Below are positions 28,179-58,620 of a stretch of DNA of 64,000 nt, piece by piece (positions within the stretch are counted from its first letter, which is position 1; every line of letters starts with the position of its first letter). Made by a program: the position numbers and the translations under genes. The DNA is taken from positions 182,195,697 to 182,259,696 of the forward strand of contig NC_068981.1 in NCBI RefSeq assembly GCF_001194135.2. Direction: 5' to 3'. Below the pieces are notes generated by a model. That model did not search any database and was not told the origin of the DNA. It saw only the letters and a program-made list of their open reading frames with translations. Origin of the DNA: Octopus bimaculoides. Lineage: Eukaryota.

Positions 28179-28356
28179 ATGTCAGCTCCACCACCACCTC
28201 CACCGCCATGTGCGCCCCCGCCTATGAAGTTGGGTTCCAAAAAACAAGCCAGTAATACTTCCAAGCCTGTTGATAGAAATGTTTTCCTCGGAGAGATTCA
28301 TAAAGGTACTAGACTCCGAAAAGCAGTTACCAATGACCGTAGTGCACCAGCAGTTG
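28179..28356 (+). CDS. WIPF: WIP/verprolin (WAS/WASL-interacting protein family) polyPro + WH2 exon (exon 28162-28356)
   Basis: MSAPPPPPPPPCAPPP...DRNVFLGEIHKGTRLRKAVTNDRSAPAV carries the WIP-family WH2 signature LKKxVTNDRSAP. Acceptor ttttaattacag|, donor G|GTGAGT (phase 1). The vertebrate paralogue cannot be assigned. Confidence 0.93.
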
Positions 28357-32402: not shown

Positions 32403-32513
32403 GAAATAAAAAGGCTTCACCGGCTTCAAAATACAATACAATAGGTGTACATACACATCGACAACAACATCAAGTGAAGGATAACGCATTATGGAGAAGA
32501 GGAAGCCAAGATG
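32403..32513 (+). CDS. WIPF: WIP-like gene cassette exon 2 (111 nt, phase 1/1): GNKKASPASKYNTIGVHTHRQQHQVKDNALWRRGSQD
   Basis: Acceptor cttaaccttatttttttctatag|, open in the phase left by exon 1, donor GATG|GTAGTT. Confidence 0.75.
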
Positions 32514-32859
32514 GTAGTTGACTGCTACATTAGTCCTGCACTGTGCATGTCTGATTAATTTTTTTGCTTAGTTTTTCATAGTTACGTGATATCATTGATT
32601 GCCATATTGTGCATGTTTTTTGCTCTTCTAACCTGACAAATGCTTTGTTTTTTTTTTGTTTTTGACTTTTTAGTTTGTCTCTGAGATGTTGTTATTAGGG
32701 TTCTTCATTAAGTTATTATCGTTTTATCCCTAAATTCAAAAATAGTATTTTTAATGATATGAATAATATCAATGGTACTGCAATTCTGAAGATAATAATC
32801 TTTAATGATAACAATAATGATGATGGACTCTCCTAACATATAACATGAGCATTCAACTT

Positions 32860-33115
32860 TTGCTGAATGACCTGCGCAAAAGATTTGTTTATTGTGATCA
32901 AATGTTTGTGCCACACATTTGCTCACTCTTTCCATCAAATCAACGTTATTTGAAGAGGTGCACTGTATACCACTTGTTACGTGCTGAGATGTTTGCAGAA
33001 CAACATGAGATGAAGTGTTTTGCTCAAGAACACAATACGCCACCTGGTTTAGGAACTGAAATCATGATCGCTAGTTTGTGAGTGCAACACCCTAACCACC
33101 AGGCAATGTTTCCTC
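32860..33115 (-). mobile_element. tRNA-head SINE (A-related)
   Basis: Reverse complement reads gcctggtggttagggtgttgcactcac...ttgtgttcttgagcaaaacactt; related copy at 49020-49320. Confidence 0.7.
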
Positions 33116-33149
33116 ACATAATAATAATAGTAATAATAATAATAATAAT

Positions 33150-33545
33150 AATAATCTTTTCTACTCTAGGCACAAGGCCTGAAATTTTTTGGTTGGGGTG
33201 CAATCGATTAGACCGACTCCAGTACAAAACTGGTACTTAATTCATTGACCCCGAAAGGATGAAAGGCAAAGTCGACCTCAACGAAATTTGAACTCAGAAC
33301 ATAAAGACAGACGAAATACTGCTAAGCATTTAGACCAGTGTGCTAACATTTCTGTTAGCTCGCCCTTCACATAATAATAATAATGATTTCAAATTTTGGC
33401 ACAAGGCCAGCAACTTCAGGGGAGGGTATAAGTCAATTACATTGACCCCCAGTATTCAGCTGATTCTTATTTTATTGACCCCGAAAGGATGAAAGGCATA
33501 ATCGAGCTTGTCAGAATTTGAACTCAGAACCTAAGGTCAGACAAA
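33150..33545 (-). mobile_element. Two tandem SINE-C copies
   Basis: Two successive reverse-complement copies, each preceded on + by (AAT)n. Confidence 0.85.
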
Positions 33546-33684
33546 AGGTCACTATAACAGTAATTAATTAATGATAATCAGCTTTTTACACTGCTTGAAG
33601 TACAACGACTTGGAGCACTATTTATTGAAAGTAGAATGGTGAATAAGTGTAATTATGTAATTTTGGGGGATAACTAAATTTATT

Positions 33685-34043
33685 TAGGTGCAGGCTTGGC
33701 TGTGTGGTGGTTTGTTTCCAAACCACATGGTTTCAGTTTTTGTCCCACTTGGACAAGTGTCTTCTGCTATAGCTTTGGGCTGACCAAAGGTTTGGGAGTG
33801 GACTTGATTGACAGAAACTGAGAGAAGCCTGTCGTGTGTGTGTGTGTGTTTTCTCCCACCAGCACTTGACAATTAGTTTTGGTTTGTTTATGTTCCTGTA
33901 ACTTAGCAGTTCAGCAAAATAGACCAATAGAACTGGCACTACACTTAAAACAAATAAGTATTGGCGTTGATTTGTTTGACTAAGTCCTTCAAGGTGGTGC
34001 TCCAACATGGCTGCAGTCCAATGACTGAAACAAGTAAAAGATT
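33685..34043 (+). mobile_element. SINE-B1
   Basis: Head, GT hinge and tail ending gactgaaacaagtaaaaga. Confidence 0.85.
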
Positions 34044-34260
34044 AAATTTTTTTATCCAGTGTTCTCTTGGTTCCAGTACCCATCAGTGATGATGGTATAA
34101 AAGTAATAATTTAACTCTCTACATTCTGAGTTCAAATCCAGCCAAAGGATTTGAATTTAGATTGTAAAGAGCCAGAACGCATACCTCAAAACATTTTCCC
34201 CTGGCATTTTCATGATTCTGCCACCTCATCATCATGATAATAATTATTGTTAATAATTAT

Positions 34261-34476
34261 GCAGTGAACTGGCAGAATCATTAATACATCACACAAACTG
34301 CTTAATGACATTTCATCTGGCTCTTTATGTTCTGAGCTCAAATTCCTCTGAGGATGATTTTGTCCTTCATCCTTTCAGAGTTGATGAAATAATGTACAAG
34401 TTAAGCACAGGGATTGATGTAATTGACTAGCTCCCTGTCCCCAAAATTTCAGGCCTTGTGCATATAGTTGAAAGGA
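34261..34476 (+). mobile_element. SINE-C copy whose (ATT)n tail abuts the R4/Dong element
   Basis: gcagtgaactggcagaatca...aaatttcaggccttgtgc..gaaaggatt. Confidence 0.8.
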
Positions 34477-35234
34477 TTATTATTGTTATTATTATTATTA
34501 TTGTTATTATTATTATTATTATTATTATATGAAAACTCACAGTTTATTTTGCTGGATATGATGGAAAGTGTCAGCTGTCCACAGCCAGTTGACTAAGGTG
34601 ACACTTGTTTACTGGTCATGCTTCAAGAATCTTGTGAAGAATTCTTGTAGTACCAAGCAATGCTGATTTTTGTAGGTGTTCTATCTTTACATGTGTACCA
34701 GTCTTTTGGAGCCATTTTGGTAGTTGAATGCTGTTACTTCCAAGTGTGCCAATTACTATTGGTATCATGTCTACTCTTCTCATTGATCACAACCTTCATA
34801 TTTCCCACTTCAAATCATTGTAGTTGTTTATTTTTTCTTCTTCGGTCTTTTTGATCCTGTTGTCATTGGGACATGCTATGTCAATTACCATGCATGTTCT
34901 TTTTTATTCACCACAACAATGTCCAGTTTCCGATGTCTGCTCTGGTGATCACACTGAATCATTGCATCTCACAGGATTTTGCAATTCTCATTCTCGGTGA
35001 CTCCTTCTAGAGTTTTCTCATACCACGTTTTTGCTCTTTGTAGGCTATGATTTCCACAGATTCCCAATGGATCATTCTTGCCACATTGTCACGTCGTCTT
35101 TTGTATTCATGCTATGCCAATTTGAGGCTTTTGCTAATGATGTGCTGTACCATTCACATGCATTTGTTGCTATTGGTAGTGTTGTCTATTCTGCACTTCA
35201 CACAGTTGGTCCTTAATGCTTGTTCTTGAGCTGT
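34476..35234 (-). mobile_element. R4/Dong-clade non-LTR retrotransposon 3' fragment (RLE endonuclease), degenerate
   Basis: Minus strand with stops and frameshifts reads AQEQALRTN...EYKRRRDNVARMIHWE..WYEK...ENENCKIL*D..RKLDIVV...VIDIACPND..EEEKINNYNDL..IPIVIGTLG..LQKSALLGTTRIL; stop at 34616-34618; (TAA)n tail. Confidence 0.85.
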
Positions 35235-35236
35235 AC

Positions 35237-35480
35237 AGGTGAGCTGGCAGAATCATTAGCACACCAGGCAAGATGCTTTGTGGTATTTCACCCATTACTA
35301 TGTTCTGAGTTCAAATTCCGCCGAAGTTGACTTTGTATTTCACCCTTTTGGGGTCAATAAATTAAGTAGCAGTGAAACACTGGGGTCAGTGTAATCAACT
35401 AGTCCCCTCCCACAAAATTTCAAGCCTTGTGCCTTCAGTAGAAAGGATTTTTATTATTATTATTATTATTATTATTACAT
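35237..35480 (+). mobile_element. SINE-C copy with (ATT)n tail
   Basis: aggtgagctggcagaatcattagcac...gaaaggatttttattattat. Confidence 0.85.
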
Positions 35481-35811
35481 TTGTTTGTTTTTAATGTCTT
35501 TTACACCTATATAATTTAGCAATAAATTTTACATGATAAAGCAACATATACACAGGTGTATGAATAATTGTGTCCACAACAGTAGTATAGCTGTGACAGT
35601 GGTGGTGGGTCAGCCCCGGACATCACTTTTATGGAGGTGGCACTTTTGTGTCTGCTGTATAAGGTCGTATAGGTTGGGGTTGGGAGTGGGGTGCAAACTT
35701 AAGCACTCTCCCAGGAGGCACATTCTAGGTTTGCCACTGATCCCACCATCACATTTACTATGACATTAGTTGTTTTTTAGTTGTTTTCCTACGTTCTTTG
35801 AGTTCTTTACA

Positions 35812-36032
35812 TTAACCCTTTAGCATTCAGATTACTCTGTCAAATGTTATGCCTATTTATTTCAGTTAATCATACATTATCTCACAGCTTCAAGATTACA
35901 ATGATGTGATCGCTTATTTTTTTTAGAAAGACATTGTAAGGTAGGCATGAGAAGTCAGATCTGGTCAATTTGAACATGATACAGCTACAATATTTAGGCC
36001 AGACAAAGCCAATTTAAATGCTAAACGATTAA
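35812..36032. mobile_element. TTAA-flanked (piggyBac-type) MITE
   Basis: TTAA-ccctttagcatt ... aatgctaaacga-TTAA; opposite orientation to 12164 and 17405. Confidence 0.85.
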
Positions 36033-36204
36033 TTTTAATTGGAATAATTTTGTTTTACTAAATGGGTAGTTTTATGCAAGATCAGTTACTATTTCACTTG
36101 TATATTTTCTCAGTATAATAACAAGTATATTAATGTATATTATGCAAACAATAAAATACATATTAGTAAGATCAGTTTCGTTCAGCTCTCTAACTTCACT
36201 AATA

Positions 36205-36309
36205 TTACTAATAGCTACTTTTATAAGCAGTTTTCATTTATTACTAATAGCTACTTTTATAAGCAGTTTTCATTTATTACTAATAGCTACTTTTATAAAC
36301 GGTTTTCAT
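36205..36309. repeat. 36-bp tandem repeat, about 2.9 copies
   Basis: Unit ttactaatagctacttttataagcagttttcattta starts at 36205, 36241 and 36277. Confidence 0.95.
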
Positions 36310-37418
36310 AAAATTTTACTATAAGCAACTCAAAATGGAAATGCTTCAATAACGATAGACATTTTAATAGAACTTTCATGTTAACATTTTTTTCTTCTAT
36401 CTTGCTAAATTGAAAGCAGCTTCAATAACAACAAGTACACCGAATTGAATTTGCCATCTGCTAATGAGCTTCTTATATCATTAACACTTGCTGCTCTAGT
36501 TAGTTTGCTCTTGTTGACTAAACTAAGTTGCTGCAGACAACAGAGATAATTAATTTTATTCTTTATTGTTCCAGCATTGATTTATCAACTTTGTATTTCA
36601 AATGATCATAATTGGTAAAAATTTTAATGAATGGGAAAAAACAGTTTCTCATTCTTTTGTCACTTTACTTTATTTCCGTGTGCATTTGTTAGTAATCTTC
36701 ACAAACAGCTAAAAAGAATTTTTCCCCCTTTCGTTTTTTAAAATATTAGTTCCAAGTTAAATATGTGTATATTTGCACTTTTTTTTTTTTTGCACTTGTA
36801 TTGTATATATTTCCTTGAAATGCTAAAATGAATTTTTTGTCTGTGTGTGTGTATGTATACACTTGTAGTTATTCTTTCTGTTTTTATAAATTTTGTAAGG
36901 AAAATATTTTAATAGAATATTTATGTTTTTACATATAATCTTTTACAGCTGAAACTACTTTTATGAAATGATTTAAATTAGTTTTGTAATAAAATACTTA
37001 TGTATCTCTAATTCAGTAGACATAGCTTGTGTATATGCCTGCATGCTCATGTGCATGTATGTGTACACAATGTAGTCTTATTTTTATTTTTAATATCTTT
37101 TATGGTAATGCAGTTTCTAAAATACTTTGCCTAAGTCATTTTCTTCAGAAAGCATTAAATTCTAATGAACATAATTTTTTTACTGTATATTCTCTATTAT
37201 GCATTTACAGTGTATTTTCTAAACTATATTTCTTATCTAATATTTAAAATGTGTATTTTGATACTGAAACCTGGTGTGATCTTTGTATAGTACTTGTTTT
37301 GAGATTTTATTTTTCTTTCTACCACCAAAACAAATTAATTTTGTTATGAAATATCCATTTAATGCTAACATAATATATATATGTATACACTTTGAAATTT
37401 CTGTTTTTCACTTTGCAG

Positions 37419-37760
37419 ACTGTTCAGCTATATTAATTCAAAGGAAGAAAATCCTTGAGAAAAAACAAAAAAATGTGATATCCAATCACAAAATAAACCC
37501 AATCAATAATAATGCTAAGTCAAGTTATTCACTTACAGCTGCCACCAAGAACACTGGTCTCCAAAATAATTTGCCTGTTTTATCAAAAACTCTTCCAGCT
37601 AATATTTCTCATAGCAATGATCTTAGTCATGGTCTTAACTACAATCAAACTAACAGTGATTCTGTAAACAATAATGAGTTTAACAAACCAATAGACTGGT
37701 ATATAAAACGGGGCCTTAATGAGTCTAACACACGTTGGATTTCAAATCTGAAGAAAAAGG
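37419..37760 (+). CDS. WIPF: WIP-like gene cassette exon 3 (342 nt, phase 1/1), N/S/K-rich
   Basis: Acceptor ctgtttttcactttgcag|, 114 open codons (DCSAILIQ...RWISNLKKK), donor AAGG|GTATAA. Confidence 0.75.
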
Positions 37761-37964
37761 GTATAATTATTATTGTTGTTTATAGCTTAGTTAACCCTTG
37801 CCTTTTGCCTATTCAGTGAGTCTTTTGTCAGCCTTGCACTAAAATGGTTTTTATCCTCTTCACCTGTTTTAAATTAAAACCTTTTTTTTTTTTTGTTTCT
37901 TTCTAGCTTTTCCCTATATATTGTTGGTATTTTCCCTAGTGCAAGTTACAGTTATTTTATAGAC

Positions 37965-38420
37965 ACTGGTGTGGCTGTATGATAAGAAGTTTGCTTCCCA
38001 ACCACACGGTTTCCGGTTCAGTCCCACTGCATAGCTACTCAGGAAAGTGTCTGCTATTATAGCTCGAGGTTAACCAAATCCTTGAGAGGATTTGGTAGAC
38101 AGAAACTGAAAGAAACCTGACAAATGTGTATGTGTATGTATGAAAGTATGTATGTATGTGTATAAATGTGTGTGAGTGTTACTGTTCTCTTGTCTTGATA
38201 TTGTATGACAGTTGTAAATGAGTTTCACTGTCATATAAGCGGCACCTTTCATTTCCAAGTTTCCATGAAAACAGTCTTATAGTGGGGAAATATTACCTTA
38301 CTTGGAAATAAATGAGGGTTGGCAAGAGGAAGAGCACTTGGTTGTAGAAAATCTGCTTCAACAGATTTTGCCCAACCCATGTAAGCAGGGATAAGTGGAT
38401 GTTAAAATGAGGATAACAAG
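37965..38420 (+). mobile_element. SINE-B2
   Basis: B head, microsatellite and RTE-type tail. Confidence 0.75.
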
Positions 38421-38790
38421 GATTTTTTAGCTCTGGGCTTTTCATTTTTTTTTTTTTTTACATTAAGCTGTTTTCTGTGGTTTCTTTCAATCTGTTTGTT
38501 TCATGAATATCATGGAACTTATATAATTATCATGGATGTCAGGAAAAAATATAGAAAATTATGCAGGTCCCTCTTAGACGAATAATTTTAGAATACACAG
38601 GTCTGGCTGTGTGGCTAAAAAGCTTGCTTTCCAATTATGTAGTTTGGGATTGAGGTACACTGAACAGCACTTCAGGCAAGTGCCTTCTTTGATAACATAG
38701 GGCCAACCAATGCTCTGTGAGTGGATTTGGTAGGCAGAAAAGGAAAGAAACCTATTGTATATATATGTATGTATATATGTGTGTGTATAT

Positions 38791-39897
38791 ATCATCATCA
38801 TCGTTGTTTAATGTCTGCTTTCCATGCTGGCATGGGTTGGACAGTTTGACTGAGGGCTGGCAAGCCAGAAGGCTGTACCAGGCTCCAATCCGATCTGGCA
38901 AAGTTTCTACAGTTGGATGCCCTTCCTAATGCCAACCACTCCAGAAGTGTAGTAGTGGGTGCTTTTTACATGCCACCAGCACAAGAGCCAGTCAGGCGGT
39001 ACTGGCATTGATCACACTTGAATGGTGCTTTTCACATGCCACTGGCATGGAAGCCAGTCAGGCGGTACTGGCAATGACCACGCTCAAATAATGCTTTTTA
39101 CGTGCCAATCAAGCAGTATTGTCATCAGCCACAACGATTTTGCTTGCCTCAACAGGTCTTTGCAAGCACAGTTTATTGCCCAATGATTGAAGGGTACTCT
39201 TAAATGGGCCTGTTATGCTGCACTGGCATAGGCCACACTTATGGTCTCACTTGGCTTGCCAGGTCTTCTCAAGCACAGCATATCTCCAAAGGTCTCAGTC
39301 ACTTGTCATCGCCTCAGTGAGGCCTAAAGTTCGAAGGTCATGTTTCACCACCTCATTCCAGGTCTTCATGGGTCTACCTCTTCCACAGGTTCCCTCTACT
39401 GTTAGGGTGTGACACTTTTTCACACAGTTGTCCTCATCCATACGCAACACATGACCATACCTGCGCGGTTGTCTCTCTTGCACACCACATCTGATGCTTT
39501 TCTCTCAGGGCGCTTACACTCTTTCATGTATGCACACTGACATTACAGATCCAGCAGAGCATACTGGCTTCATTCCTTGCAAGCTCACGCATATCCTCAG
39601 CAGTGCCATGTTTCATTGCGATGTAGCATGGCTGTTTGCACACATGTCATACAGTCTACCTTTTACTCTGAGCGAGAGGCTCTTTGTCGCCAGCAGAGGT
39701 AGGAGCTCTCTGAACTTTGCCCAGGCTATTCTTATTCTAGCAGTTACACTTTCAGAGCATCCACCGCCGCTACTGACTTGGTCAGCTAGGTAACAGAAGG
39801 TATCAACTACTTGTAGTTTTCCTCCTTGGAATGTGGCGGAAGCTGTTTTCTGCACATTTTCAGTGTTTATTGCCCCTGAGCATTTTCCACACACATA
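38791..39897 (-). mobile_element. RTE-clade LINE, 5'-truncated, frameshifted
   Basis: CGKCSG..VDTFCYL.D..S.GGG.SESVTARIRIAWAKFRELLP and YGHVLRM...GRGRPMKTW are typical RTE C-terminal motifs; 3' UTR and (GAT)n tail at 38791. Confidence 0.92.
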
Positions 39898-39959
39898 TAT
39901 ATAGTGTGCTATGCCTGAGAGGACCCATTAAGTCAAGTGCACCCATGCTGGTGACACGT

Positions 39960-40345
39960 AGAGAATACTTTCTGAGCATTGGGCCTCACAGAGGCAAAGT
40001 GGCTGAGTTCTTTGTGATTGTTGGGCCTCACAGAGGCAATGACAAAGACCACTGGCATTTTGTTGTGTTTGAGAAGAAATCCCATCAACCAAGCAAAATC
40101 GCAGATACCGGTGTCATGCAAATTGCCACATAAACACACCCCAATATCATGCAAATGGCATCCGTGCCGGTGGCACGTAAAAGCACCCATTATACTCTGA
40201 GTGGTTGGCATTAGGAAGGGCATCCAGCCATAGAAAACCATGCCAAATCAGACTGCAGTCTGGTGCAGCCCTCGAGCGTGCCAGTTTGGTCAAACCATCC
40301 AACCCATGCCAGCATGGACAACAGACGTTAAATGATGATGATGAT
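39960..40345 (+). mobile_element. Second RTE 3' fragment, different 3' UTR variant
   Basis: LGLTEAMTK ORF end, then a different UTR and the shared terminus with (GAT)n tail. Confidence 0.8.
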
Positions 40346-40773
40346 AACATCTCACTTTTCATGTAGTCACTAATGATCATATAGAACCAATTGTGTCACT
40401 TAATCTTTCCATCTGGGCCACAAGCATTTGAGATTTCCCAGATTTCTGCTCTGCAAAAGTAGAAACAAATTCAGGAAACTTGTTAGATATATTGTTTTCT
40501 CTATCAGTTTTTTACAGCTCGAGTTACAAGTTCATTGGGATCGTCTCTCAAGTGGACATGTATGTTTTGAGTGTGGATAAGTTTAACATACAAAGGATAG
40601 CATTTAGATAGCCCTCATTTTGTAATTAAGTAGATATAAGAGCAAGTACTTTGAGTGTTTACGTTCCTTAGTACTGAAGTCAATGTGACACAAGTTTACA
40701 AATTAAGTTTTTATACCCCAGCACATTTTTAGATACTAGCATTCCTCTTCCTGATCATCTCCTCACTCTTACA

Positions 40774-40815
<42 letters not shown>

Positions 40816-41226
40816 GTAGTAATAATAACAGTTGTATAAATATCAAATCTTGTTCACTGTGTGAATCAGATAATAATAGAGATAATTATGTAATTAGTAC
40901 TATTTGTTCTAATGGCAATTCTCCCCATGTTCCTTTTACTTTATCATTTCTAAATAAGAAGCATTTTCTTGTAAGAAGTCTAATTTCTTAGAGAAATTAT
41001 TATTGTTGTCTTTTGAATCTTTTCTTTACTCATTTAATTTACTATATTCATTTTCTTTTGTAATTAAAAGTAAATCATTTATTTTGCATTTGTTTTAATT
41101 ATAGAAATATCTAACATAATTAACATATTTGTTTTCAACCCAGATTAGTTTTATTTTCTTAACTAATTAATGTCTTTTTCTTTTATTTTCTGAACTGCCT
41201 ATAACTTAACAATTTACCAATTTCAG

Positions 41227-41910
41227 TTCGTCGGCTATCGGCGTTTTCCTTTCCTGTGATGACATCTTCCAAGTCCAGCTTTGAAATCTCACCAAATATA
41301 CAATATTCTTCTCAAACATCTTCAGTGCCTCAGCATTCTCCTAACCAATTTGTAGCCCACTTAAAAACAACAAAAGCAGAATCATCATCATCATCGTCTC
41401 ATTATGCATCACCAGTGTCTCATCAGAATAAGAGCTCTGTTATTATTAACAAAACTGAAAAGACTCAGCAGATGGAATCAGAAATTATCACTACTCCATC
41501 TTCTAGAACTAATCAAGATACCTCTAATGATATAAGTAATACTAGCTTTACTAGCTCTGATAATTATCTGTCTCCCTATCAGTATTCTAAACCATATTCT
41601 TCTCAGAGTGTTGAGAATAATGTCAATGTTCCCTCAACAGTACCAGTACCACCATTGATTGAGCAGATCCAATCCAATTTCAAAAAGCTAAAACATAGTT
41701 CTCCTAAAATGGCCAAAGCTAGGACTAGCAGTGGAAATAAATCCAACTTGAAAATTATTCAAGGTTCTCCTTACCATACATCATCGAAAGCTGCCAAAAC
41801 ACTAGAACAGCAGCTTCATTCTCTGCGCAAGACCTCAATCAACCGTAAGACTACATCTTTCGAACCTTCGGCACCAGTATCAGAATGGAGACAGAAGTTG
41901 AAAGTGGATG
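41227..41910 (+). CDS. WIPF: WIP-like gene cassette exon 4 (684 nt, phase 1/1), S/T-rich with WH2-like motifs
   Basis: Acceptor ttaccaatttcag|, 228 open codons (VRRLSAFSFP...EWRQKLKVD), donor GATG|GTATAC. Confidence 0.8.
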
Positions 41911-42074
41911 GTATACAATGCACAGTTATTAGTTTTAGAGTTTTGTTGTTGGCACTTTGCATAAGCATATAATTAATTATAGAATTTCCCATCTTCTTGA
42001 ACACTCACACAAACATGTTACTGCCTTGCAAAAATACTATTCAGTAAGAACTAGCTAACTTTTCATAGCTGTGT

Positions 42075-42122
<48 letters not shown>

Positions 42123-43730
42123 NNNNNNNNNNNNNNNNNNNNNNNNNNNNNNNNGACAGTAACTTCAAAGTCACTATCAACAATATCCTTGCTTAAGAAT
42201 AATAAACTCTACAAAAGTATAGAGTAACCTCTGAGATTAATGTAAAATTGTTTTTATTATAAGTGAACATAAAAACAAACTATTTTGGGCATGGCTACAT
42301 GTCTGAAGCTGGTGTCATGAGAAATGCTTCCAGTACACTAGGTAAAGTGGATGGTGCTAAGAAGGACATCTAGCCATAGAAACCAAGCCAAAAAGGAAAC
42401 CTGAGTGAGAGGAGGTCTTCCAACCCTCTAGGCAAGCAGTACTCCTTAGTATATGCTGACTCAGACCATGTGATCCATCTACCCCATGCTAGCCTGAAAA
42501 GCAGACATGATATGGTGACATATATGTATATAAATATATATATTATATAATAATCAGCTGCATGAAAACAAACAGCAAAGTTGGTGCTAATGTACCCAGC
42601 GTAGTGAGTCAATTAATTTTAATTAGTTAGAAATTTCTTTGCTCACTACATTATATATGTATGTATTGGTGCCTTCTTTACTATTTTTGTTATTTCTGTT
42701 GACTAAGAAAAGGCTTTTTGATCAGACTTCTGGTAAATTTTATGCTATGAACTGATTGGTGTATGTTTTTCTTTCAAATGCCTTTAAAATAATTTATCCA
42801 TATGAATATGAATATTTTCCTGTGTCACTCTCTGTGTGATCTACAATGTGTTGGTTTATAAACCTCAAGAGACATCATTGATAAATCTCAAGTGTGTTGG
42901 ATTGGCAGAATCGGACAAAATGCCTTTGTGCTGTTTAGTTACATACAACTCTTAATGTTGCCAGTCCAAATCTTGCTGAGATCAACTTTGCCTTTCTATC
43001 AAGGTGAATTAATTAAAATACCAATTGTGTACTGGCGTTAATAGTATTGACTAAACCCATCCCCTCATAATTGCTGTCCTTTTGCCTTCAGTAGAAATAA
43101 TTATTTATATGCTTAAAAAACCTTGTGAACAATGTGTTCATAATGCTAACCAACAAGATTCATGTTTACCCTTTTAATTTCAGTATCAGTTTATCTTAAT
43201 TAGAAATAATTTAAGCTACAAGTAATAAAGATTTTAATATTATTTTATTTTAAGGATAGTGGGTGACTAAAACAAAAGAGAGAGAGAGAATGATGGATTA
43301 AATATTTTGTAGTATTTAGTTACGCAGTTTTATATTTGAGTTCAAATCTTTCCTAAGCCTTTTCACCCTCCTAGGGTTAAAATAATATTTACCAGTAGAT
43401 ACTGTTGTCAGTTTAGTCATTTCTACCTTCTACCAAAATCTGTGACACTGAGCTTGTCAGAAATCAACATAAATTTATTATTGATGTTTTTTTAATTAGT
43501 ATGTGTATATAATTTTTTTACTTGATACATCATTATAGAAACTTTGGAAGCTGTATAGACTTTCAAAGTGTGACTGATTTCTTTGGCTGTGTTAGTGGAC
43601 GCTAACACATGCCCACAATATTGACATGTCAACATTGCAGCAAAAAATTTAATGCCAGCTTTAAAGACTTAATAACTACAGATTCCCATAAAGTTTTACA
43701 CTAAGAAATTGTTCAACCTATTAACTGTAT

Positions 43731-43978
43731 CAGTGGTTCTCAATCATTTTTTGCCTATAGACCCCTTTCACTTTACTGAACCTCCATCACCATTCAATAT
43801 GTATTAAAAAAATCCTTCTGTATTTTTATAATTAAATGTTATTATGAACTACATAAAAAAAAGTAAAACATTTTGTATACTGTAGAAGTGTAACCAACTT
43901 ATTGCTCATAAATTCTAACAACAAAAAAAATCTTATATGGACTCCCAAGGGTCATATAGACCCAATTGAGAACTATTG
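43731..43978. mobile_element. hAT-type MITE
   Basis: TIRs cagtggttctcaa / ttgagaactattg (Charlie-like); 8-bp TSD not preserved; ends 119 bp before the exon 5 start. Confidence 0.65.
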
Positions 43979-44096
43979 TGGGCTTTTTTTTTTTGAAACA
44001 GTAGTAATTTAAAGCTTATAGAATTGAGAATTTGTTTTTATAATCTACCTCTCTGTTCTCTTTTTAATTATAATTTGAATAATTTAAAATTTTCAG

Positions 44097-44903
44097 CTCC
44101 CAGTTTCCATAGATTTTCTGCTTCTCGTTTGAATATTCGCCAGCCTGGAACTCCCCGGCATCGATCTGCAGCTATGTCTCATTTTAGACCAGTAGCTACA
44201 ACAAACACTCCGAACTCTTACAATTTGACTAAACCTTCTTCAGATATCGTTGCAACTAACTCCACTAATGTTTTAACTGTTGCTGCTAAATTTTCTAACT
44301 TTGACCAACAGCAAGCATATCCAAAAGAGACTAAAAAAGAATGTATCATCTATGAAAAACCTCAACTGCCCTCCCAAAAGTATAAAAGTCCAGTAACTAG
44401 TATTTATGAATCTGCAGCTATTTTTGAACAACCCCAAAATTCAGCATACAAACTACCTAAACAGTTTTCACAACCATCAACAGTATCACAAACAACTTCT
44501 GAGGAAAAACCAGCAGAATTTCTGGAAGTTACTCTGAAATCAACAAAGTTTTCGACTTTATTTTATGGTGCTAAAAAAGATCCCAAAAAGGATTTCACAC
44601 CGTTTGGAAATTACAACCGATCACCTTACGGGAACCCGTCTTTATTTAAGAGTAATAATAATAATCTAAACCCTTATGTAAGATCTGTTTCCTACCACGG
44701 GCCACTTTCAGAAGCTTCCTACTCAAAGTCTCCACAAAACTCAGGCAGTTATTTCCGACCAATTGGTTGTTCATTCTTCCAGCCTTCATTTATGTCCAAT
44801 TCTGAGAGAGGATATTCTGAAAATACCTATCAAATGTCAGCTTCAGCACCATCACTGGTTCAAAATCGTATCAAATGGGCACTGAACATGTCTTCATCTG
44901 ATG
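44097..44903 (+). CDS. WIPF: WIP-like gene cassette exon 5 (807 nt, phase 1/1), S/P/N-rich
   Basis: Acceptor tttaaaattttcag|, 269 open codons (APSFHRFS...VQNRIKWALNMSSSD), donor GATG|GTATTG. Confidence 0.8.
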
Positions 44904-45289
44904 GTATTGTTCCTGTTGTATTCCTTCTCCTTATGCACATAGTTTCCTTCTGCTATACAGCTCATTTCTACCCACTGTTTTGCATACAATCTCAAGGTTT
45001 AGTGGCAAAGCTTCAAACTCTGGCACCAAAAGAGAAAAAAAAAACACAAAAAAGATCACATAAACAAACCCAAGGTTGAATTCATGTTTTCACTCATAAA
45101 AAGTAATTTATAATTAATTATATCATTATTGAGGTTGATAACAACGTTGGAGTATCATTATTAAAAGCACACCAAATAAAAATTGAGGTTATTTAATTGC
45201 ATTCTTTTCTAATCTGAGCAAAAATCATGTTTAAATCAACTTACCCTTGAGTTGATTAAATAATTACTTATAACATAGTAAAATACTCG

Positions 45290-45880
45290 GACTTGGCAGA
45301 ATTGCTAGCATGCTGGGAAAAATGCTTAGTGGCACTTCATTAATTCTTTTATTCTTTTACTTTTGTTTCAGTCATTTGACTGCGGCCATGCTGGGGCACC
45401 GCGTTTTAGTTGAGCAAATCGACTCCAGGACTTATTCTTTGTAAGCCCAGTACTTATTCTATCGGTCTCTTTTGCCGAACCACTAAGTTACTGGGATGTA
45501 AGCACACTAGCATCAGTTGTCAAGCGATGTTGGGAGACAAATACAGACACACAGGCACACACACATATATTCGACGGGCTTCTTTCAGTTTCCGTCTGCC
45601 AAATCCACTCACAAGGCTTTGGGCGGCCCAAGGCTATAGTAGAAGACACTTGCTCAAGGAACTAATGGAACTGGAACCATGTGGTTGGTAAGCAAGCTAC
45701 TTACCACACAACCACTCCTGCACCTATATTTAAATATAGTTTAAATTTTTATATGATTGACTTTACCTTTCATCCTTTTGAAGTCAATAAAAATAAGTCC
45801 TAGTTAAGTACTGGGGGTTGATGCAGCTGACTTTCTTCCCCCAAAATTGCTGGCCTTGTGCCAAAATTTGAAACCAGCAT
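45290..45880 (+). mobile_element. SINE-C interrupted by a SINE-B1 insertion
   Basis: C head at 45290-45340; C 3' half resumes at about 45755. Confidence 0.75.
45344..45726 (-). mobile_element. SINE-B1, full length, apparently young
   Basis: Many CpGs retained; colinear with 20150-20546. Confidence 0.9.
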
Positions 45881-46429
45881 ATTAGAAGTTGAGTTGATTG
45901 TACCACCAACCCTAAATTGTATGGCCTTATGTCAATGTTAAATTTATTATTGACGCTAATAAATAGTTCGTTATTTGAACTTTGAGACTCAGGATGATTT
46001 TTTTTTAATGGTAATGAAAAAGAGGTCTCCAGTCAGTGTTGAGTTTCTGAAATTTTCTATAAATCTTATAAAACTCTTTTTAATCAAAGTGGTGTTAATC
46101 AAATACTACTTTTGTTGAGCTCAACAATTCTTGGTTCATTAAGTACTACGTGATTATTAAACTAATTAGGTGCCAAAAATAAACCTTCTATTAGTTTCCC
46201 TATTGCTGGTGAGACCATAAAAATATCTTGTACTTCATTTGAAAACACAGAGAGGCAGCAATATAATTAGTTAAATAACAATGTAATTGAGTTGCAAACT
46301 TGGCTAACATCATGTTCATAAACAGACATATATATTTGTTAATTTGACCGGTATGTAAAATTTAGAAAGTTCCATCCTCTTGAATATTGGCCTTTCAATA
46401 TATCTTCTTACTAATAGTTACTGTGGTGT

Positions 46430-46855
46430 CATCATCATCACCATCGTTATTATTTTAACATCCACTTTTCCACGCTTACATGAGTCAGGTGGAATTTGTT
46501 GAGGCAGATTTTCTATGATTGTATGCCTTTCCTAGCATAAATCCTTATATGTTTCCAAGCAAAATAATATTTCCCCACAGCCAGACATGTTTTCACAGAA
46601 GATTGAAAACAAAAGACACCTCCTGTGGCACTAATTTACTTATGTCCTGCAATGTCAAGATAAGGAGATGCAAACACACTAATACATATACAACAGGCTT
46701 CTTTCAGTTTCTGTCTACCAAATCCACTCACAAGGTTTTGATCAACCCAGGACTAAGAAGACACTTACTACCCATGGTGCCACACAATAGGACTGAACCT
46801 GCAACCATACTGTTGGGAAACAAAGTCCTTAACCACTCATCCATGTCTGCTCCTC
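46430..46855 (-). mobile_element. SINE-B2 (diverged)
   Basis: Reverse complement of B head plus RTE-type tail. Confidence 0.7.
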
Positions 46856-46974
46856 ATAGCCATAGAGTAAAAACGATTATATTCTTGAAGTGTAAACAAG
46901 GAAAGGAAGTAGGTATGTTGACATTTTACTGGCTAATGAGCATGAGGCAGACAAGGACATATGTACTTTAAAAA

Positions 46975-47283
46975 ATATTTCTGGTTGTATGGTAAGAACA
47001 GCATGGTTCAGAGTTCAGTCCCACTGTGTGGGACCTTGTGCAATTATCTTCTACTTTAGCCTAGAAGCAACTAAAGCATTGTGAGTGGATTTGGTTGACT
47101 GAAACTGAAAGAAGCCCATTGTGTGTGTGTGTGTGTTTGTGTTTGTGTCTGTGTGTACGTCCCCCGTAACCTAGCAGTTCAGTAAAAGAGACCAATAAAA
47201 TTAGTACCAGGGTTTAAAAAAATAAAGGTGGTGCTCCAGTGTGGCCACTGTCTAATTACTGAAACTAAGTAAAAGATAAAAGG
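46975..47283 (+). mobile_element. SINE-B1 (internally deleted)
   Basis: Head, GT hinge, tail ending gaaactaagtaaaagataaa. Confidence 0.75.
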
Positions 47284-49019
47284 CATCGAAGTAAAATGTG
47301 GCTTATGCATTGGTGTCATTTTCCAAGCTGCTTAGTTTTAGGAATGTAAACAAACCAACACTGGCTGTCAAGTGGGGAAGGGAATAGCAAGCAAGACACA
47401 CACACACACACGTGTGTGTGTGAGTATATCTATCTATCTATCTATATATATATATATATATATATATAGATTCAAGGTGAATAAGGTGATTAAAGTCAAA
47501 ATAAGCAACAAGAATATCCAAAGATATTGCGGTACGATCGTTTCATGCAACTCCATTTATTTAAGCAATGTAAACATTACATCAAATATAAAATGCAGAG
47601 CAATCCTCAGCTGCACAAAGATATAGAAATTTACTGAAATTTCATTTCAACAGAAGGACATATTTGTTTCAGTCATTCGACTGTGGCCATACTGGAGCAC
47701 CACCTTTATTAATATATATGTGTGTGTGTGTGTGTGCAATGGAATTCCATACAGTTTCTGTCTACCACTCACAAGGCATTGGTCAGTCTAAGGCTATAGT
47801 AGAAAGTACTTGCTCATGATGCTGCACTGTGGAACTGAACTAAAAACCACATAGTTGCAAAGTAAGCTTCTTAACCACATAGCCATGCCTATTGATAAAA
47901 TATCTGTAATGCTGCTATGGTAACTCTCTCTCTAGATATCAGAGATATTGTGTAATAATTAACACGTCCTCCTCTCAGAGGTAATAGCAGACTTAGTGGT
48001 TATGACTGAATCATAACCATGCTTTGGGCTTCACTTGCTGTCACTCTACAATTATTGATTGGTCCTGTTTAATATTACTGGCTGTCTCAACTGATTGATA
48101 AGTGTAACTGTTAGTCTGTGTCTTTCTGTATACAGTGAGGTAAAATGAACTGGCAAGAGTTAAGTGCTCTTGCATGAGTGATGTTTAAGTGCTAATGACA
48201 CACTATGAGCCATCAATTGCTTGTGCCCATTTGACTTCTTCATTTGCTTCTCTCACTTTAATTGATACACAAGAACAACCAATTGTATTAGATTTGTGAT
48301 TCACCGCTGATAGTTTATCTGATTAGTTCTAAGCCAAAATTAATCGACATGTTTAACCAGCCAATTGCCAATTGATTAAAAAAACATTAGTTGGGGAATG
48401 AGAATATAAAAATAAAGTAGTTAAGTAAAGATATCTGAAAATTATGTTTATATCAAGTAGTTTGTTGGTGGTCACTAAGGAGCAAGGAATAAATTCCCAC
48501 CTTGCTTCTCCTAGGACATAGTTTCAATTCCATGTAGAAGCTAATTTATTCATGTGTGTGTAATAGACAATAAGCAAAATAAGAGATGACAAGAGTGGGA
48601 CAAGTTTTAACAAATGTATTCATTTGACATTTAAAAGGAAGAGAAAGAATCTCGATGTTTCAGACATTAATCCATCTTTAAAAAATATAAAAAGAGCAGG
48701 AAATATGTGTGTTCGTGTGTGCATATGTTTTGATCCACATGTATTTTCATTGACACTATTTAGCTAGTAGTGATGACGTTTAATTCCAACATAAGTAAGC
48801 AAAAATATGTCACCTTAACTGTTCATGTGAAGTTGTGGAATAGTTGGCTTCATTTGTAAAAATAAGTTAGGGTCAATATTAGAAAGAGCTTCTAATCATA
48901 AAATGCTGCCTCTACAAGTCTTGTCTAACTTAAACCAACATGGAAAAATTAGACATAAAAACGATGGTGATGACTGATTGTTAGATAACAAGAGTGAAGA
49001 GGGAAAAACCTACATACAT

Positions 49020-49320
49020 GATCACGTGATTGACCAGACTATTGAATGTTGTACATTGCTGGTCACAATGCACTTTGCATTGTTTTAGCTTTCAAATAAT
49101 GCCTCCTCACTGGCTAGGTGAGCAGGCCAATATTCCTTCTGATCAGGTGACTAATCTATCACAGGGTTACTCATTTACATCTTACATCTGAGTAGATTGG
49201 TGTGTTGTGAAATTATGTGTTTTGCTCAAGAACACAATATGCCACCTGGTTCAGGAATCAAACCCACAATCCAGCAATCATGAGTGCAATGCTCTAACCA
49301 CTAGGCCATGTGCCTTTATT
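49020..49320 (-). mobile_element. tRNA-head SINE (A-related)
   Basis: Reverse complement ggcacatggcctagtggttagagcattgcactcatg...; head shared with 32860-33115. Confidence 0.7.
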
Positions 49321-51081
49321 CATATGTAAATAACAATCAGATTCAATAATAGTAGTATTAGTGAGCTACAATGTAGACAAAATTGAATTCAACTTATTAA
49401 CTTCATTAATTTAACAAAATTAATCAAACAATACCCACTGTCCAAACTCTTATTGCCATGTAGTGTTAGATTTACTAGATTTAGTAAATTCACTTCAGTG
49501 TTTTCTAAATTCTCTGATGAAATGTGTTGCCATATTTGACTGGAATCTAACACTTCCCTTTCACTTCTTTGCAGACCCCCTGTTTCAGGGAAAACACTGT
49601 TGTATAGATCAATGGAAATATTTTTGATTTACTTATGCACTTTAGACCTCTTTATTTGATTCTGATTTCTCTGTTTTATAATAACTTTTTATTGTTAGTG
49701 ATGTGTGAGTATTAATTACTGATAAAATGATTTTAATTAAAAAATTTTTTTTTTTTTAAACTTACATTGTTTTGTCTGTAATTTTCGTATTTATATCTGG
49801 TAATTAATATTAAATGACATATTTCTGGTATTTGAAGTATTGTATTTAGTGAAAGATATCTCTGTCCTTCAGAACTGTTTTGATTTTAAATTGTCTTATC
49901 GATTTTTGTTTTATTTATTTATTTCTAATTTCTTAATCATTAGTATTGTTATTTGTACTCTAAATAATTTTTTTAATTGAAAATTCTTTTTATAGCAAAA
50001 ATGTACATTATTTATAATTATATTTTACTTCTTGTCATGAAATAGTATATAAAGTTACCTCCCTTGTGACAGATTTGCTTCCCTTTTAAACTGTCAGCCA
50101 TGTTACCATTCCACTTTTGTAAATGGATCATTCCAAAATACAAAATATATACAGCTTGTAGTATCTGAAATTCAGAAATGATTTGTGTTTAATATTTACA
50201 GCCACTTACTATACCACAAAATAATGCAGACTGAGGAAATGGTATAAAGTGCCGTGAGCTAAACTGTATAAATTATCGTATCTAGATCAATGATAATTTT
50301 CTGAGTTCTCCACAAGACTTCTTCAGGTTTCATTGCCAAATACACACCTCCAATTATTTCTAATGCCTAATAGAATAGGAATTATTAATTGGTGCCTTGT
50401 AGTGGGCAATACTGTATGATAGTAATTATTTTGGCTGGGAATAAAGTTTGCGATCTCATTTATAATCTCTAAATAGAAACATTCTTTTATGTCTCCAAAT
50501 TGGATGAGGCATGAATGTTACAAATTTCCCTTTCTGTATCAAGCTAAAGTTTGTTTTGTTTTTGTTTTTTTTAATATATTTCTATTTAATTGTTGCCTGA
50601 AGTCAATCGCTCCATCTGCAAACAGAGAGGTTGTGACTTGCAGGGAATCGATATGGTTAATTTTAGTTTTAAGATGTTGGAGATTATTTTGTTGAGAAAT
50701 AGTTATTGGTTTGAAATACTATGCGTAAACGTTTGACGTTGCATGTAATGAAAAAGGGGACAAGAAACAGTCTTGATGATCTGAGTGTTTTAAGAAGCAG
50801 AAGAGGAAGCAAATATTTGAGCGTAATGACACATTAAAGATTGGTTTTCAATGATGTTGGTGTGGAGCTAGTCAAATATGATTTCTGAATATGTAATATT
50901 TTGCCTTCTAACTTTGACTTTCTTCTACAATTTTATCTTTGATTTTAATATTTACATGACAATATTTTATATTTTAAGATATGTTTTGACTCACTGTACA
51001 TGGCGTTTTCTATAAAATATAGATTTTCTTCTAAATTTTCTTTTTCCCTATCAGTATCTTTGGACCATTTCTTCATTGCAG

Positions 51082-51171
51082 CTAATCAAAGTACAGATAC
51101 AAAAGATGATACAGTCCGATCTTTGGTCAAAGACCGTATCAACTCTTGGGGAGGACATTATAAAGATGAGG
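51082..51171 (+). CDS. WIPF: WIP-like gene cassette exon 6 (90 nt, phase 1/1): ANQSTDTKDDTVRSLVKDRINSWGGHYKDE
   Basis: Acceptor catttcttcattgcag|, donor GAGG|GTATAA; ends in a motif similar to the end of exon 5. Confidence 0.75.
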
Positions 51172-51984
51172 GTATAACTGACTTTATCTTCTAAAGTTTC
51201 GATGTATTGGTAGCAATGGTCACAACAGTTAGTTAGTTGCACCTGCATGTATATGTTCAGTCAAATATGTTTGTCACTGAATATTGCCATAGTTTTCTCC
51301 CACAATTTAGTTCTACAGCCTTTTAAGTTAATTATGTAATCACCTGCTTATTAATGAGGTTTCTTTCCTGAACATCTCACATATATATATACTATAGCAC
51401 TTAAAAAACCTTGGCTCAGTATTTAGTATAGAACTAAATATTCTAAATAACTACTGCTTAAATGAAATACTTAATGGAAAACTATTAATAAATGTAATCG
51501 ATATTATTCAGTGTTAAATGACCTGAAGATGAGTTGCCAATATTGTATGTTAGTGTACTGCACAATATCAGATATTTGAGAAAATAACTAGAAACCTATA
51601 TATCTTACAAATTGTTCTGGGTGAAAGTTAGTTATTTAAAAGTTAATACTGTGATAGTTAAGTTCAATAGAAATTGTTAGTCATTACTTTAGATTTCTAA
51701 AAAGTACTCATAGGATTGTAATGAATATATGTAAATGTAACTTAATCAGAACTTGTTAATATTATTTAAAATGTTTCAACAAAAAAGTAAATGAACACTG
51801 TAGAAAAACAGTGTGGCTATAGAAAAGAAGTGTGCCTAACGATGTTAAATTTTGATTAGAAAATTTTAGGCATTTGAAAATTATAACTAAAAAAAATTTT
51901 TTTTATCAGTTTATAATATTTAAGTCTAAATCTTTTCTTCAATTAGTCATGAATTATTAGTCACGAATTATTCAATTTATAGAT

Positions 51985-57040: not shown

Positions 57041-57659
57041 AAAACAACTTAATATTAAACTGATGAATTGCTCAATACTTTTTTTCTGGGGCACATATTT
57101 TTTAAACTTTTACTAGAAGAGGTGTAACAGCTACTTTGATGTTTTGGCCTTCAAGTCTTCATCAGACTTGTAAAAGTCTAGTATTTGTATGTACACACTC
57201 ACACATGTTTTTGTGTAACAGTCAGGAGAAGTACTCAATGCAAATGTGGAGTGCAACGGTTTATACAGACCTGTCTACGACCTTGTTACTTAGGAGTTTC
57301 TGCAGAGTGTAGACTTCTCTGTAGAACTGACTACATACTGCAGAAACTCCAGAATTACACAACCTCCCCACCCCCACCCGTTGGATTGGCCTAAATAAGC
57401 AAAAGCAACAATGACTGCGTTGATTGGGGTGATAGTATAGTTATGGTTTCCTAATGAAGTTTTTAGTTCCTGCTACTGTTGCGTTGTTCTGTTAATGAAA
57501 TATCACTTGTCACCTGACTGCCCATCTGTTGACAGCAGGTGTCAATTGACAATTATAGTGACATAGTTACTACCGTTGGGCTATAGCTGTCGCTGTGTGT
57601 ATGAGCATGCACATACACCTTTGTTGTATGAAACAGTGTTTAGATCATAGTCACAATTA

Positions 57660-58620
57660 TATTGGGTCATCCCATAAATAATGTGGGTTTTTTTATACTT
57701 CTTTTATTTTTCAAAATTAAGATAGACAAAGTTCTTTTTTAATCTAAAATATACTCTCCTTCATTTTTACAATGCTCTTCCATCTATCTGGTAGACTTTC
57801 AAAATTCACTTATCCATGACGAAAAATACTCTTCAAGTACTGTTCTGACCACATCTACAAAATTCATATTTTTTCCGTCCAAATGATTTTGAAGACTGCA
57901 GAATAAATGATTNNNNNNNNNNNNNNNNNNNNNNNNNNNNNNNNNNNNNNNNNNNNNNNNNNNNNNNNNNNNNNNNNNNNNNNNNNNNNNNNNNNNNNNN
58001 NNNNNNNNNNNNNNNNNNNNNNNNNNNNNNNNNNNNNNNNNNNNNNNNNNNNNNNNNNNNNNNNNNNNNNNNNNNNNNNNNNNNNNNNNNNNNNNNNNNN
58101 NNNNNNNNNNNNNNNNNNNNTTATATTGGGTCATCCCATAAATAATGTGGGTTTTTTTATACTTCTTTTATTTTTCAAAATTAAGATAGACAAAGTTCTT
58201 TTTTAATCTAAAATATACTCTCCTTCATTTTTACAATGCTCTTCCATCTATCTGGTAGACTTTCAAAATTCACTTATCCATGACGAAAAATACTCTTCAA
58301 GTACTGTTCTGACCACATCTACAAAATTCATATTTTTTCCGTCCAAATGATTTTGAAGACTGCAGAATAAATGATTATCGGATGGGGCAACATTCGACAA
58401 ATATGGTGGATGGGGCATCATTTCTCATTCAAACTGCTCCATCCTTTGGAATGTCATCCTTGCTGTATGTGGCCAAGCATCATCCTGATGGAAGAACACC
58501 TTTCATCTTGAAACCAAAGATGGTCGTTTTCCTTGTAGCACTGACTTAAACCACACAAGCTACTTGCAGTAGATCTCCTTTGTTATCATTTGGTTCTGGG
58601 GAGGAAGAATTGTACACAGT
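57660..58620 (-). mobile_element. Mariner (DD34D-type) transposon 3' relic; terminal 256 bp present twice around a gap
   Basis: Minus strand reads HQDDAWPHTAR...MPHPPYLSNVAPSDNHLFCSLQNHLDGK..EGEY; TIR ttgggtcatcccataaataatgtggg next to TA. Confidence 0.9.
57913..58120. other. Assembly gap (208 N) flanked by identical sequence
   Basis: 57657-57912 is identical to 58121-58376. Confidence 0.95.

Follow-up and report, generated by a model that had tools for sequence, protein, structure and literature searches.

Locus and Gene Identity

The window analyzed here is a stretch of 64,000 nucleotides (nt) from Octopus bimaculoides (contig NC_068981.1, positions 182,195,697 to 182,259,696 of the forward strand), which, according to sequence comparisons, holds the 5' part of the WIPF (WIP/verprolin) gene. 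The WIPF family includes WIP/WIPF1, WIRE/WIPF2 and CR16/WIPF3 in vertebrates, Vrp1/Sltr in Drosophila and verprolin Vrp1p in yeast. On its plus strand, the window carries WIPF coding exon 1 and, downstream of it, five further segments, here designated c1 to c5, each of which has a Trp codon shortly before a G|GTA donor. These segments had been singled out in an earlier note as five cassettes with a common 3' signature, and the nature and origin of this signature is the subject of the present analysis.

Coding exon 1 (28179..28356, plus strand) encodes the initial Met, a poly-Pro stretch and a WH2 motif (..VFLGEIHKGTRLRKAVTNDRSAPAV). Its product begins MSAPPPPPPPCAPPP, and the WH2 domain is recognized by Pfam at residues 30-56 (PF02205, E = 2.7e-9), preceded by the poly-Pro stretch. 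This arrangement, an N-terminal poly-Pro segment followed by a WH2 of the type LRKAVTNDRSAP, is as in the other members of the WIPF family. The exon ends in phase 1 at GTTG|GTGAGT. An exhaustive phmmer search with the spliced model of 737 residues returned 109 proteins, including WIPF and verprolin proteins such as WIPF of the cuttlefish Acanthosepion pharaonis, verprolin 1 of Lycorma and a full-length protein of Solemya velum (P0011). Word-index protein searches returned almost nothing and missed proteins that phmmer found, and they are hence uninformative on absence.

The protein deposited for O. bimaculoides (P0006; UniRef A0A0L8H5D3, “WH2 domain-containing protein,” 98 residues, 99% identical) consists of exon 1 spliced to c1, followed by read-through of the c1 donor (..WRRGSQDGS*). 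Likewise, in the cuttlefish WIPF model (P0007; CAE1290480.1) exon 1 is spliced to c1, and the reading frame then runs through the c1 donor (..SQDGSLILAHY..). Both models are probably truncated. The full-length WIPF-type proteins, P0011 of S. velum (444 residues) and the Logan protein P0023 (463 residues), continue after the WH2 motif with an equivalent of c1 (..KFNTVAARP..NAWRGSRDD), then GGLFGGGIPTLPK, a Pro-rich centre and a WASP-binding end (..YKFHDINELPVPEPY..YPSK). Since both contain the c1 equivalent, c1 is a conserved WIPF exon and not a lineage-specific cassette. P0023 carries a Tyr at the place of the c1 Trp.

The c1 exon (32403..32513, plus strand; 37 codons, phase 1-1) ends with ..ALWRRGSQD at the donor GATG|GTAGTT, with the Trp codon at 32492-32494. 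It resembles the second exon of other molluscan WIPF proteins (K-Y-N-T-I-G .. W-R-R-G-S-x-D), and the resemblance extends to the phase and position of the introns. When P0011 was mapped onto the S. velum WIPF locus (contig L013), all four introns of the coding region were found to be in phase 1, and those after exon 1 and c1 occupy the same positions in octopus and Solemya. The second Solemya exon ends AAT GCC TGG AGG GGC TCT CGG GAT GAT G|GTATTG (..NAWRGSRDD), with the Trp seven codons before the donor; the donors of exon 1 and of the large exon are GCAG|GTAAGT and GATG|GTAAAT. As all the Solemya introns are in phase 1, junctions of this kind, with the exon ending on a G in phase 1, are characteristic of the gene. 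In a contig from a decapodiform-like cephalopod (L014), c1 ends ..LWRKGSQD at the donor GATG|GTAGTC. These comparisons date the c1 Trp motif (W-R-x-G-S-x-D) and its GATG|GTA donor to before the split between cephalopods and bivalves.

Coding Constraint on c2, c3 and c4

The next three segments are all in phase 1-1 on the plus strand. The c2 segment (37419..37760; 114 codons) is rich in Asn and Ser and ends with ..NTRWISNLKKK at the donor AAGG|GTATAA, with the Trp codon at 37736-37738; a second Trp at 37697-37699 (DWYIKRGLNE) lies 21 codons from the exon end and 13 residues before the terminal Trp. The c3 segment (41227..41910; 228 codons) is rich in Ser, starts with VRRLSAFS and ends with ..SAPVSEWRQKLKVD at the donor GATG|GTATAC, with the Trp codon at 41886-41888. 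The c4 segment (44097..44903; 269 codons) starts with APSFHRFSASRLNIRQPGTPRHRSAAMSHFRP and ends with ..SASAPSLVQNRIKWALNMSSSD at the donor GATG|GTATTG, with the Trp codon at 44876-44878.

Comparison with a close octopus relative was possible through genomic contigs (Logan runs SRR118693xx) that span c2 (L012), c3 (L011) and c4 (L008) with their flanks; nucleotide identity is 0.91 in the exons and 0.87-0.92 in the introns. The substitutions in the three exons are concentrated at third codon positions (4/7/18 for the first, second and third positions in c2, 21/11/32 in c3 and 17/11/42 in c4; pooled 42/29/92, chi-square P = 1.4e-9). The ratio of nonsynonymous to synonymous substitution rates (dN/dS) is 0.22 for c2, 0.32 for c3 and 0.24 for c4, and 0.26 for the pooled set (Fisher P = 1e-15). 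No indel was observed in c2, and c3 and c4 have two indels each, all of 3 nt, so that four of four exon indels are in frame, whereas most intron indels are not multiples of three. The donors of c2, c3 and c4 are identical in the close relative, and the acceptor AG and the last seven intron bases are kept, with two substitutions further upstream at c3. In c2 and c3 the surroundings of the Trp are the same in the two species, and the stretch from the Trp to the donor is free of indels. By these measures of codon-level constraint, c2, c3 and c4 are real coding exons, and for c2 and c3 the constraint is demonstrated for the exon as a whole. They are contained in no named protein of the databases searched, and a Pfam scan of c1 to c5 identified no domain and only weak, sub-threshold matches in c2.

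Selection on the c4 Peptide

The c4 exon was also recovered from a distant cephalopod (contigs L002-L007, from six runs), with 39% identity over 242 residues (E = 1.8e-25). The acceptor position and phase are as in octopus, and the donor is AATG|GTATCC. Beyond the donor, the octopus frame is lost by a frameshift in the close relative and closed by a stop codon after five codons in the distant species, which indicates that the coding sequence of c4 ends where the earlier note had put it. The conserved Trp motif, SASAPSLVQNRIKWALNMS (44837..44893, plus strand), contains RIKW and is identical at 17 of 19 residues in the distant cephalopod, in which the exon ends SASAPSLVQCRIQWALNMSDN with the Trp eight codons from the end.

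The C-terminal island of c4 has 10 synonymous differences among 20 codons between octopus and the distant species, and at four codons the amino acid differs. In the N-terminal island (F-x-R-F-S-A-x-RLNIRQPGTPRHRSAAMSH), 22 codons differ synonymously and six in the amino acid. Synonymous sites have thus changed freely while the peptide was kept, which points to selection on the peptide rather than on an RNA element. Codon-level comparison therefore assigns the Trp part of the signature to peptide-level selection in c4, and the same may be supposed for the other exon ends.

The c5 Segment and Predicted Structure

The last segment, c5 (51082..51171, plus strand; 30 codons, phase 1-1), encodes ANQSTDTKDDTVRSLVKDRINSWGGHYKDE and has a good acceptor (ttcttcattgcag|), a symmetric phase and the donor GAGG|GTATAA, with the Trp codon at 51147-51149. 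An AlphaFold prediction for c4 and c5 from the single sequence gave a low-confidence model (mean predicted local distance difference test score, pLDDT, 44.5), in which DDTVRSLVKDRINSW of c5 forms the sole helix. The model is consistent with a disordered stretch that includes one short helical motif ending at the c5 Trp.

The Exon-End Signature

With exon starts set by the best or nearest polypyrimidine-AG acceptors, c1 to c5 are 111, 342, 684, 807 and 90 nt long, that is, each a multiple of three with phase 1 at both ends. The five ends, Trp positions and G|GTA donors are, on the plus strand, exactly as the earlier note had given them: WRRGSQD (32492-32512), WISNLKKK (37736-37759), WRQKLKVD (41886-41909), WALNMSSSD (44876-44902) and WGGHYKDE (51147-51170). 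Only six Trp residues are present in the spliced model, and five of these are placed 7, 8, 8, 9 and 8 codons from the ends of c1 to c5; the two longest exons, c3 and c4, do contain a single Trp each. The product of the per-exon probabilities for random positions is 6e-8, which is a naive estimate; allowing for post-hoc choice of the distance window gives P of about 2e-6, and c2, c3 and c4 by themselves give 8e-6.

A TGG followed by six to eight open codons and G|GTA is found nine times on the plus strand of the window and at four sites on the minus strand. Five of these occurrences have at least 44 open codons upstream, and these are exactly c1 to c5, the other four on the plus strand having at most 17. 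Wherever orthologs allowed a check, the Trp position and the donor type are conserved (c1 in the decapodiform-like cephalopod and the bivalve, c2 to c4 in the close octopus relative and c4 in the distant cephalopod). The signature is real and non-random.

The description of the donors as off-consensus also holds: they match CAG|GTAAGT at four to five of nine positions and none has a G at +5, while exon 1 matches at six of nine. G|GTA in itself is the commonest class of donor, and only positions +4 to +6 are thus unusual. U12-type donors (/RTATCCTT) were considered and rejected for octopus, in which GTAGTT, GTATAA, GTATAC, GTATTG and GTATAA do not match. As a separate observation, the c4 donor of the distant cephalopod, G|GTATCCTA (L002 1779-1790), matches the U12-type 5' splice site GTATCCTT at seven of eight positions, and the octopus sequence GTATTGTT does not match it.

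Candidate Docking Motifs

Docking sites of the RVxF type for protein phosphatase 1 (PP1) follow the pattern [RK]-x(0,1)-[VI]-{P}-[FW]. The pattern, which is common by chance, fits the c4 motif in all three species (N-R-I-K-W in octopus, S-R-I-K-W in the close relative and C-R-I-Q-W in the distant cephalopod), and the c4 motif lies in the best conserved island. Unlike c4, the ends of c1, c2, c3 and c5 do not fit.

We also compared the ends with SFM, a short linear F-actin-binding motif of the form VxxLxxxFE, in the scoring of which Phe and Tyr are interchangeable and Trp is not named (PMC13364712). The motif is defined by V/L/I at P1, L at P4, F/Y at P8 and E at P9. The likeness is that of a short helical motif with an aromatic anchor, c5 being predicted to form a short helix that ends at the Trp. 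With the Trp placed at P8, a P1 residue of the right kind is present only in c2, c4 and c5, and the residues of c1 to c5 are D, S, P, N and R at P4 and R, I, R, A and G at P9; SFM was therefore rejected. Degenerate WH2 units at the exon ends, a possibility suggested by c3 (..LEQQLHSLRKTSINRK..SAP), were likewise rejected: the best match to a profile of 110 WIPF WH2 segments was LRKTSIN of c3, with a score of -0.7 bits (LRRTSIN in the close relative), and the Pfam scan gave no WH2 in any of c1 to c5.

Two Logan proteins, P0001 (L001 1163-4006, 947 residues) and P0031 (1040 residues), contain four poly-Pro and WH2 units followed by a tail rich in Ser and Lys. The tails include the motifs DRIK[ML]FGG, SRIKKRFGG (in P0001 only) and KF[RK]ERFE, the first of which resembles DRINSWGG of c5 (tblastn E = 0.16).

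Other Features of the Window

An assembly gap (a run of N at 42123-42154, no strand) is located in the intron between c3 and c4, within a (CT)n(TA)n microsatellite, 213 nt past the c3 donor, and the c4 acceptor follows 1.9 kb further on. It interrupts neither an exon nor a reading frame, and the orthologous contigs L011, which ends at window position 42098, and L008 separately cover the whole of c3 and c4. Continuity across the gap is irrelevant to the finding. A second gap (57913-58120) is flanked by perfect duplicates of 256 nt (57657-57912 and 58121-58376), which look like an unmerged assembly overlap and not like biology.

In the intron between c2 and c3, a block at 38000-40400 has a G+C content of 0.435, against about 0.34, a tandem duplication of 66 nt (38958-39089) and, on both strands, open reading frames of about 100 codons, of which the two scanned, both on the minus strand, have no Pfam match. 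The block is probably a transposon remnant. Pfam scans of intronic open reading frames near 29.2, 32.7 and 39.6-40.2 kb gave nothing. The introns also contain interspersed repeat families that resemble short interspersed nuclear elements and often end in CA/TG microsatellites (33748-33870, 38671-38792, 47035-47156 and others), and copies of these repeats are present elsewhere in the window, on both strands. A (CCT)n microsatellite at 58705-58740 reads as poly-Pro in one frame and is not an exon; the matches that it gave in tblastn to Pro-rich sequence of WIPF proteins are spurious.

Discussion

We propose that c1 to c5 are consecutive phase 1-1 coding exons of the octopus WIPF gene, c1 being ancestral and c2 to c4, and probably c5, being additions found so far only in cephalopods. 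We put the probability of this reading at roughly 0.55. Exon 1 would supply the head, with its poly-Pro stretch and G-actin-binding WH2 motif, and the phase-1 architecture would make each internal exon a self-contained in-frame module that ends on a split codon, usually one starting with G. Downstream of c1, the exons c2 to c5 would then encode a linker of about 640 residues rich in Ser and Asn, predicted to be disordered where it was modeled (c4 and c5), by which the octopus protein would differ from other WIPF proteins; these extra residues were found only in cephalopods.

Conservation in this linker is concentrated in short islands, which in c4 include both ends of the exon. Basic sites of the R-R-x-S type are located at the 5' ends of c3 and c4, and the Trp motifs are located seven to nine residues from every 3' end. 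One hypothesis is that these Trp-centered ends serve as docking motifs in the linker that follows the WH2 domain. The G|GTA part of the signature may mostly be a by-product of phase 1, of G at position -1 and of A at position +3. The weak donor positions +4 to +6 suggest that inclusion of the exons needs the help of enhancers, and signs of such help are seen only for c1 and perhaps for c5. With all exons in phase 1-1, any subset could be included with the reading frame intact.

A comparison may be made with the PEVK exons of titin, which are short, similar repeats with documented differential splicing, of the same phase and skippable in many combinations. The octopus exons resemble them in that a low-complexity region, predicted to be disordered for c4 and c5, is built from phase-symmetric exons of which any subset is in frame. 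They differ from them in that c1 to c5 are mutually dissimilar.

Several observations weigh against the proposal that c1 to c5 are consecutive WIPF exons. The GGLFxGGxPxL motif, the Pro-rich region and the WASP-binding domain (..F-x-F-H..PPPEP..YPSK) were not found in the 64-kb window by tblastn or pattern searches. The Pro-rich centre and the C-terminal WASP-binding region presumably lie beyond position 64000. With these canonical downstream parts absent from the window, the membership of c2 to c5 in WIPF is argued from their strand, their order and the agreement in phase. In the collections searched, c2 to c5 are joined to one another or to exon 1 and c1 by no transcript or annotated protein. 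Orthologs of c2 and c3 were seen only in the close relative, at about 90% nucleotide identity, and the evidence that makes c5 a probable exon comes from the octopus window alone. Furthermore, the structure prediction for c4 and c5 is of low confidence, and the five ends share no significant similarity beyond the Trp (P = 0.26 against random anchors, when the five flanks are compared without gaps from eight residues upstream of the Trp to six downstream of it). Docking is a putative role of the Trp motif.

The earlier note had suggested that the signature arose by exon duplication. According to this explanation, which we consider unlikely for the set as a whole, c2 to c5 go back to serial copying of an exon like c1, or at least of the 3' end of such an exon with its donor, and the Trp, a terminal acidic residue and the GATG|GTA junction alone survived the divergence of the disordered interiors. 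In its favor, all five exons are in phase 1-1, four of the five end with D or E before G|GTA, and the c1 signature is the oldest. Furthermore, the residues before the c5 Trp (SLVKDRINS) have their best match in SLVQNRIK of c4 among 601 ten-residue windows of c2 to c4 (P about 0.003). By eye, and without statistical support, R-x-S-A recurs near the start of c3 and of c4 and S-A-P before their Trp; the sequence around the inner Trp of c2 (WYIKRGLNE) looks like WRRGSQD of c1, and c2 may hold two copies of the motif.

Against duplication stand the five-way flank similarity, which is not significant (the part downstream of the Trp taken alone gives P = 0.045), and the nine-fold spread in length. 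Local alignments of whole exons score no higher than shuffled controls, except for a match between c2 and c3 that looks compositional, and at the DNA level only interspersed repeats and microsatellites were found, which led us to reject duplication visible in the DNA among c1 to c5. The tripeptide VKD, common to octopus c1 and c5, is absent from the decapodiform c1. The suggestion thus has weak support: duplication is plausible for c4 and c5, whose 3' ends match, and unproven for the other exons.

A second alternative, to which we would give a rather low probability, is that the signal acts at the level of RNA, with TGG and the purine-rich sequence that follows it serving as an exonic splicing enhancer for weak donors and the Trp arising as a by-product. 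The donors are indeed weak, with four to five of nine consensus positions and no G at +5, and GA-rich runs follow the TGG in c1, c2, c3 and c5. The strongest marks are seen in c1. Its last 28 nt together with GTAGT (window 32486-32518) are identical at 32 of 33 positions between octopus and the decapodiform-like cephalopod. The nucleotide sequence itself is frozen here among cephalopods: none of the last 10 codons shows a synonymous change, compared with 6 of 13 in the upstream KYNTIGVHTHRQQ island.

The intron downstream of c1 also has two TGCATG hexamers of the Rbfox type (32544-32549 and 32610-32615, plus strand), at +31 and +97 from the donor; in the decapodiform-like contig (L014 397-560 region) they are at +31 and +117. 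TGCATG is the binding site of Rbfox proteins and promotes inclusion when located downstream of an exon. The hexamer occurs at a rate of 0.48 per kb over the window, once after c5, at +73 (51244-51249), and nowhere within 300 nt downstream of c2, c3 or c4. The putative purine-rich enhancer and the downstream Rbfox-type sites are usual signs of a regulated exon, and they suggest that c1 is one. The pattern points to a constraint on c1 at the RNA level, either a splicing enhancer with Rbfox-type sites or, alternatively, a structure for adenosine-to-inosine editing, which is frequent in coleoids.

This explanation does not extend well to c4, in which three of the five codons after the Trp differ synonymously in the distant cephalopod while the peptide is kept, and which has no purine-rich run. 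Trp has a single codon, and the TGG itself can therefore not discriminate between the peptide and the RNA reading. The related proposal that the five exons are under shared regulation stands in so far as the donors are uniformly weak, which is suggestive; it falls short in that positive marks are present in c1 and perhaps in c5 and are lacking in c2, c3 and c4.

We also considered the possibility, likewise of rather low probability, that c2 to c5 belong to a separate, unannotated gene nested on the same strand inside a WIPF intron. No model or transcript connects these exons to exon 1 and c1, as noted above, and WIPF relatives outside the cephalopods have no similar sequence; nothing like c2 to c5 was found in the 17.5-kb Solemya intron that follows the second exon. 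However, c2 begins at a clean acceptor and lacks a start context, and c2 to c5 are all in phase 1-1, which is exactly what the donors of exon 1 and c1 need. Moreover, no Pfam domain and no promoter-like first exon were identified for such a gene.

Mutually exclusive use, which the earlier note had raised as a possibility, would imply that c1 to c5 are tandem exons of which one is included per transcript, with the Trp at a set spacing from the constant exon that follows. The exons of mutually exclusive clusters are near-equal in length. Clusters of this kind are reviewed, for example, in PMC9741552 and PMC9013439; according to PMC9741552 they are made up of homologous exons that can replace one another. 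The octopus segments resemble them in being neighboring exons of the same phase, with the weak donor type and the distance of the Trp as common features at one end. They are unlike them in that their lengths range nine-fold (37, 114, 228, 269 and 30 codons) and no homology is detectable between their sequences except at the 3' ends of c4 and c5. Furthermore, c1 is present in both P0011 and P0023, the only full-length relatives seen, and the constant exon from which the Trp was thought to keep its distance was not identified in the window. We thus consider mutual exclusivity very improbable.

Chance combined with the choice of donors after the Trp had been seen is hardly credible. GT dinucleotides are frequent and the pattern occurs four other times on the plus strand, but these four are preceded by no more than 17 open codons, the naive probability is as low as that given above, and the donors of c1 to c4 are conserved at the same position in other species.

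Returning to the proposal of consecutive WIPF exons, a more far-reaching version of it can be formulated, namely that the cephalopod insert is an array of independently skippable phase 1-1 exons, each with one Trp-anchored docking motif, accompanied by R-R-x-S phosphorylation sites. The R-I-[KQ]-W of c4 would then be a PP1 site of the RVxF type, and regulated splicing would set the number of docking sites per tissue, with c1 and possibly c5 carrying the Rbfox-type elements. We offer this version as a speculation that is improbable in its full form.

Our findings place a repeated module that ends around a Trp, and a set of unannotated exons specific to one lineage, in a gene family that is already known, and they show that the Trp-containing exon ends are a real yet fairly ordinary feature. 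An odd “signature” at exon ends can stem from two ordinary causes, a uniform phase-1 architecture and selected short peptide motifs. For annotation, the consequence is that at least three conserved coding exons further downstream are missing from the protein deposited for O. bimaculoides and from the WIPF model of the cuttlefish. If c2 to c5 do belong to WIPF, a core regulator of actin assembly through WASP and Arp2/3 would carry, in cephalopods, a large disordered insert specific to that lineage, in which docking and phosphorylation motifs are conserved.

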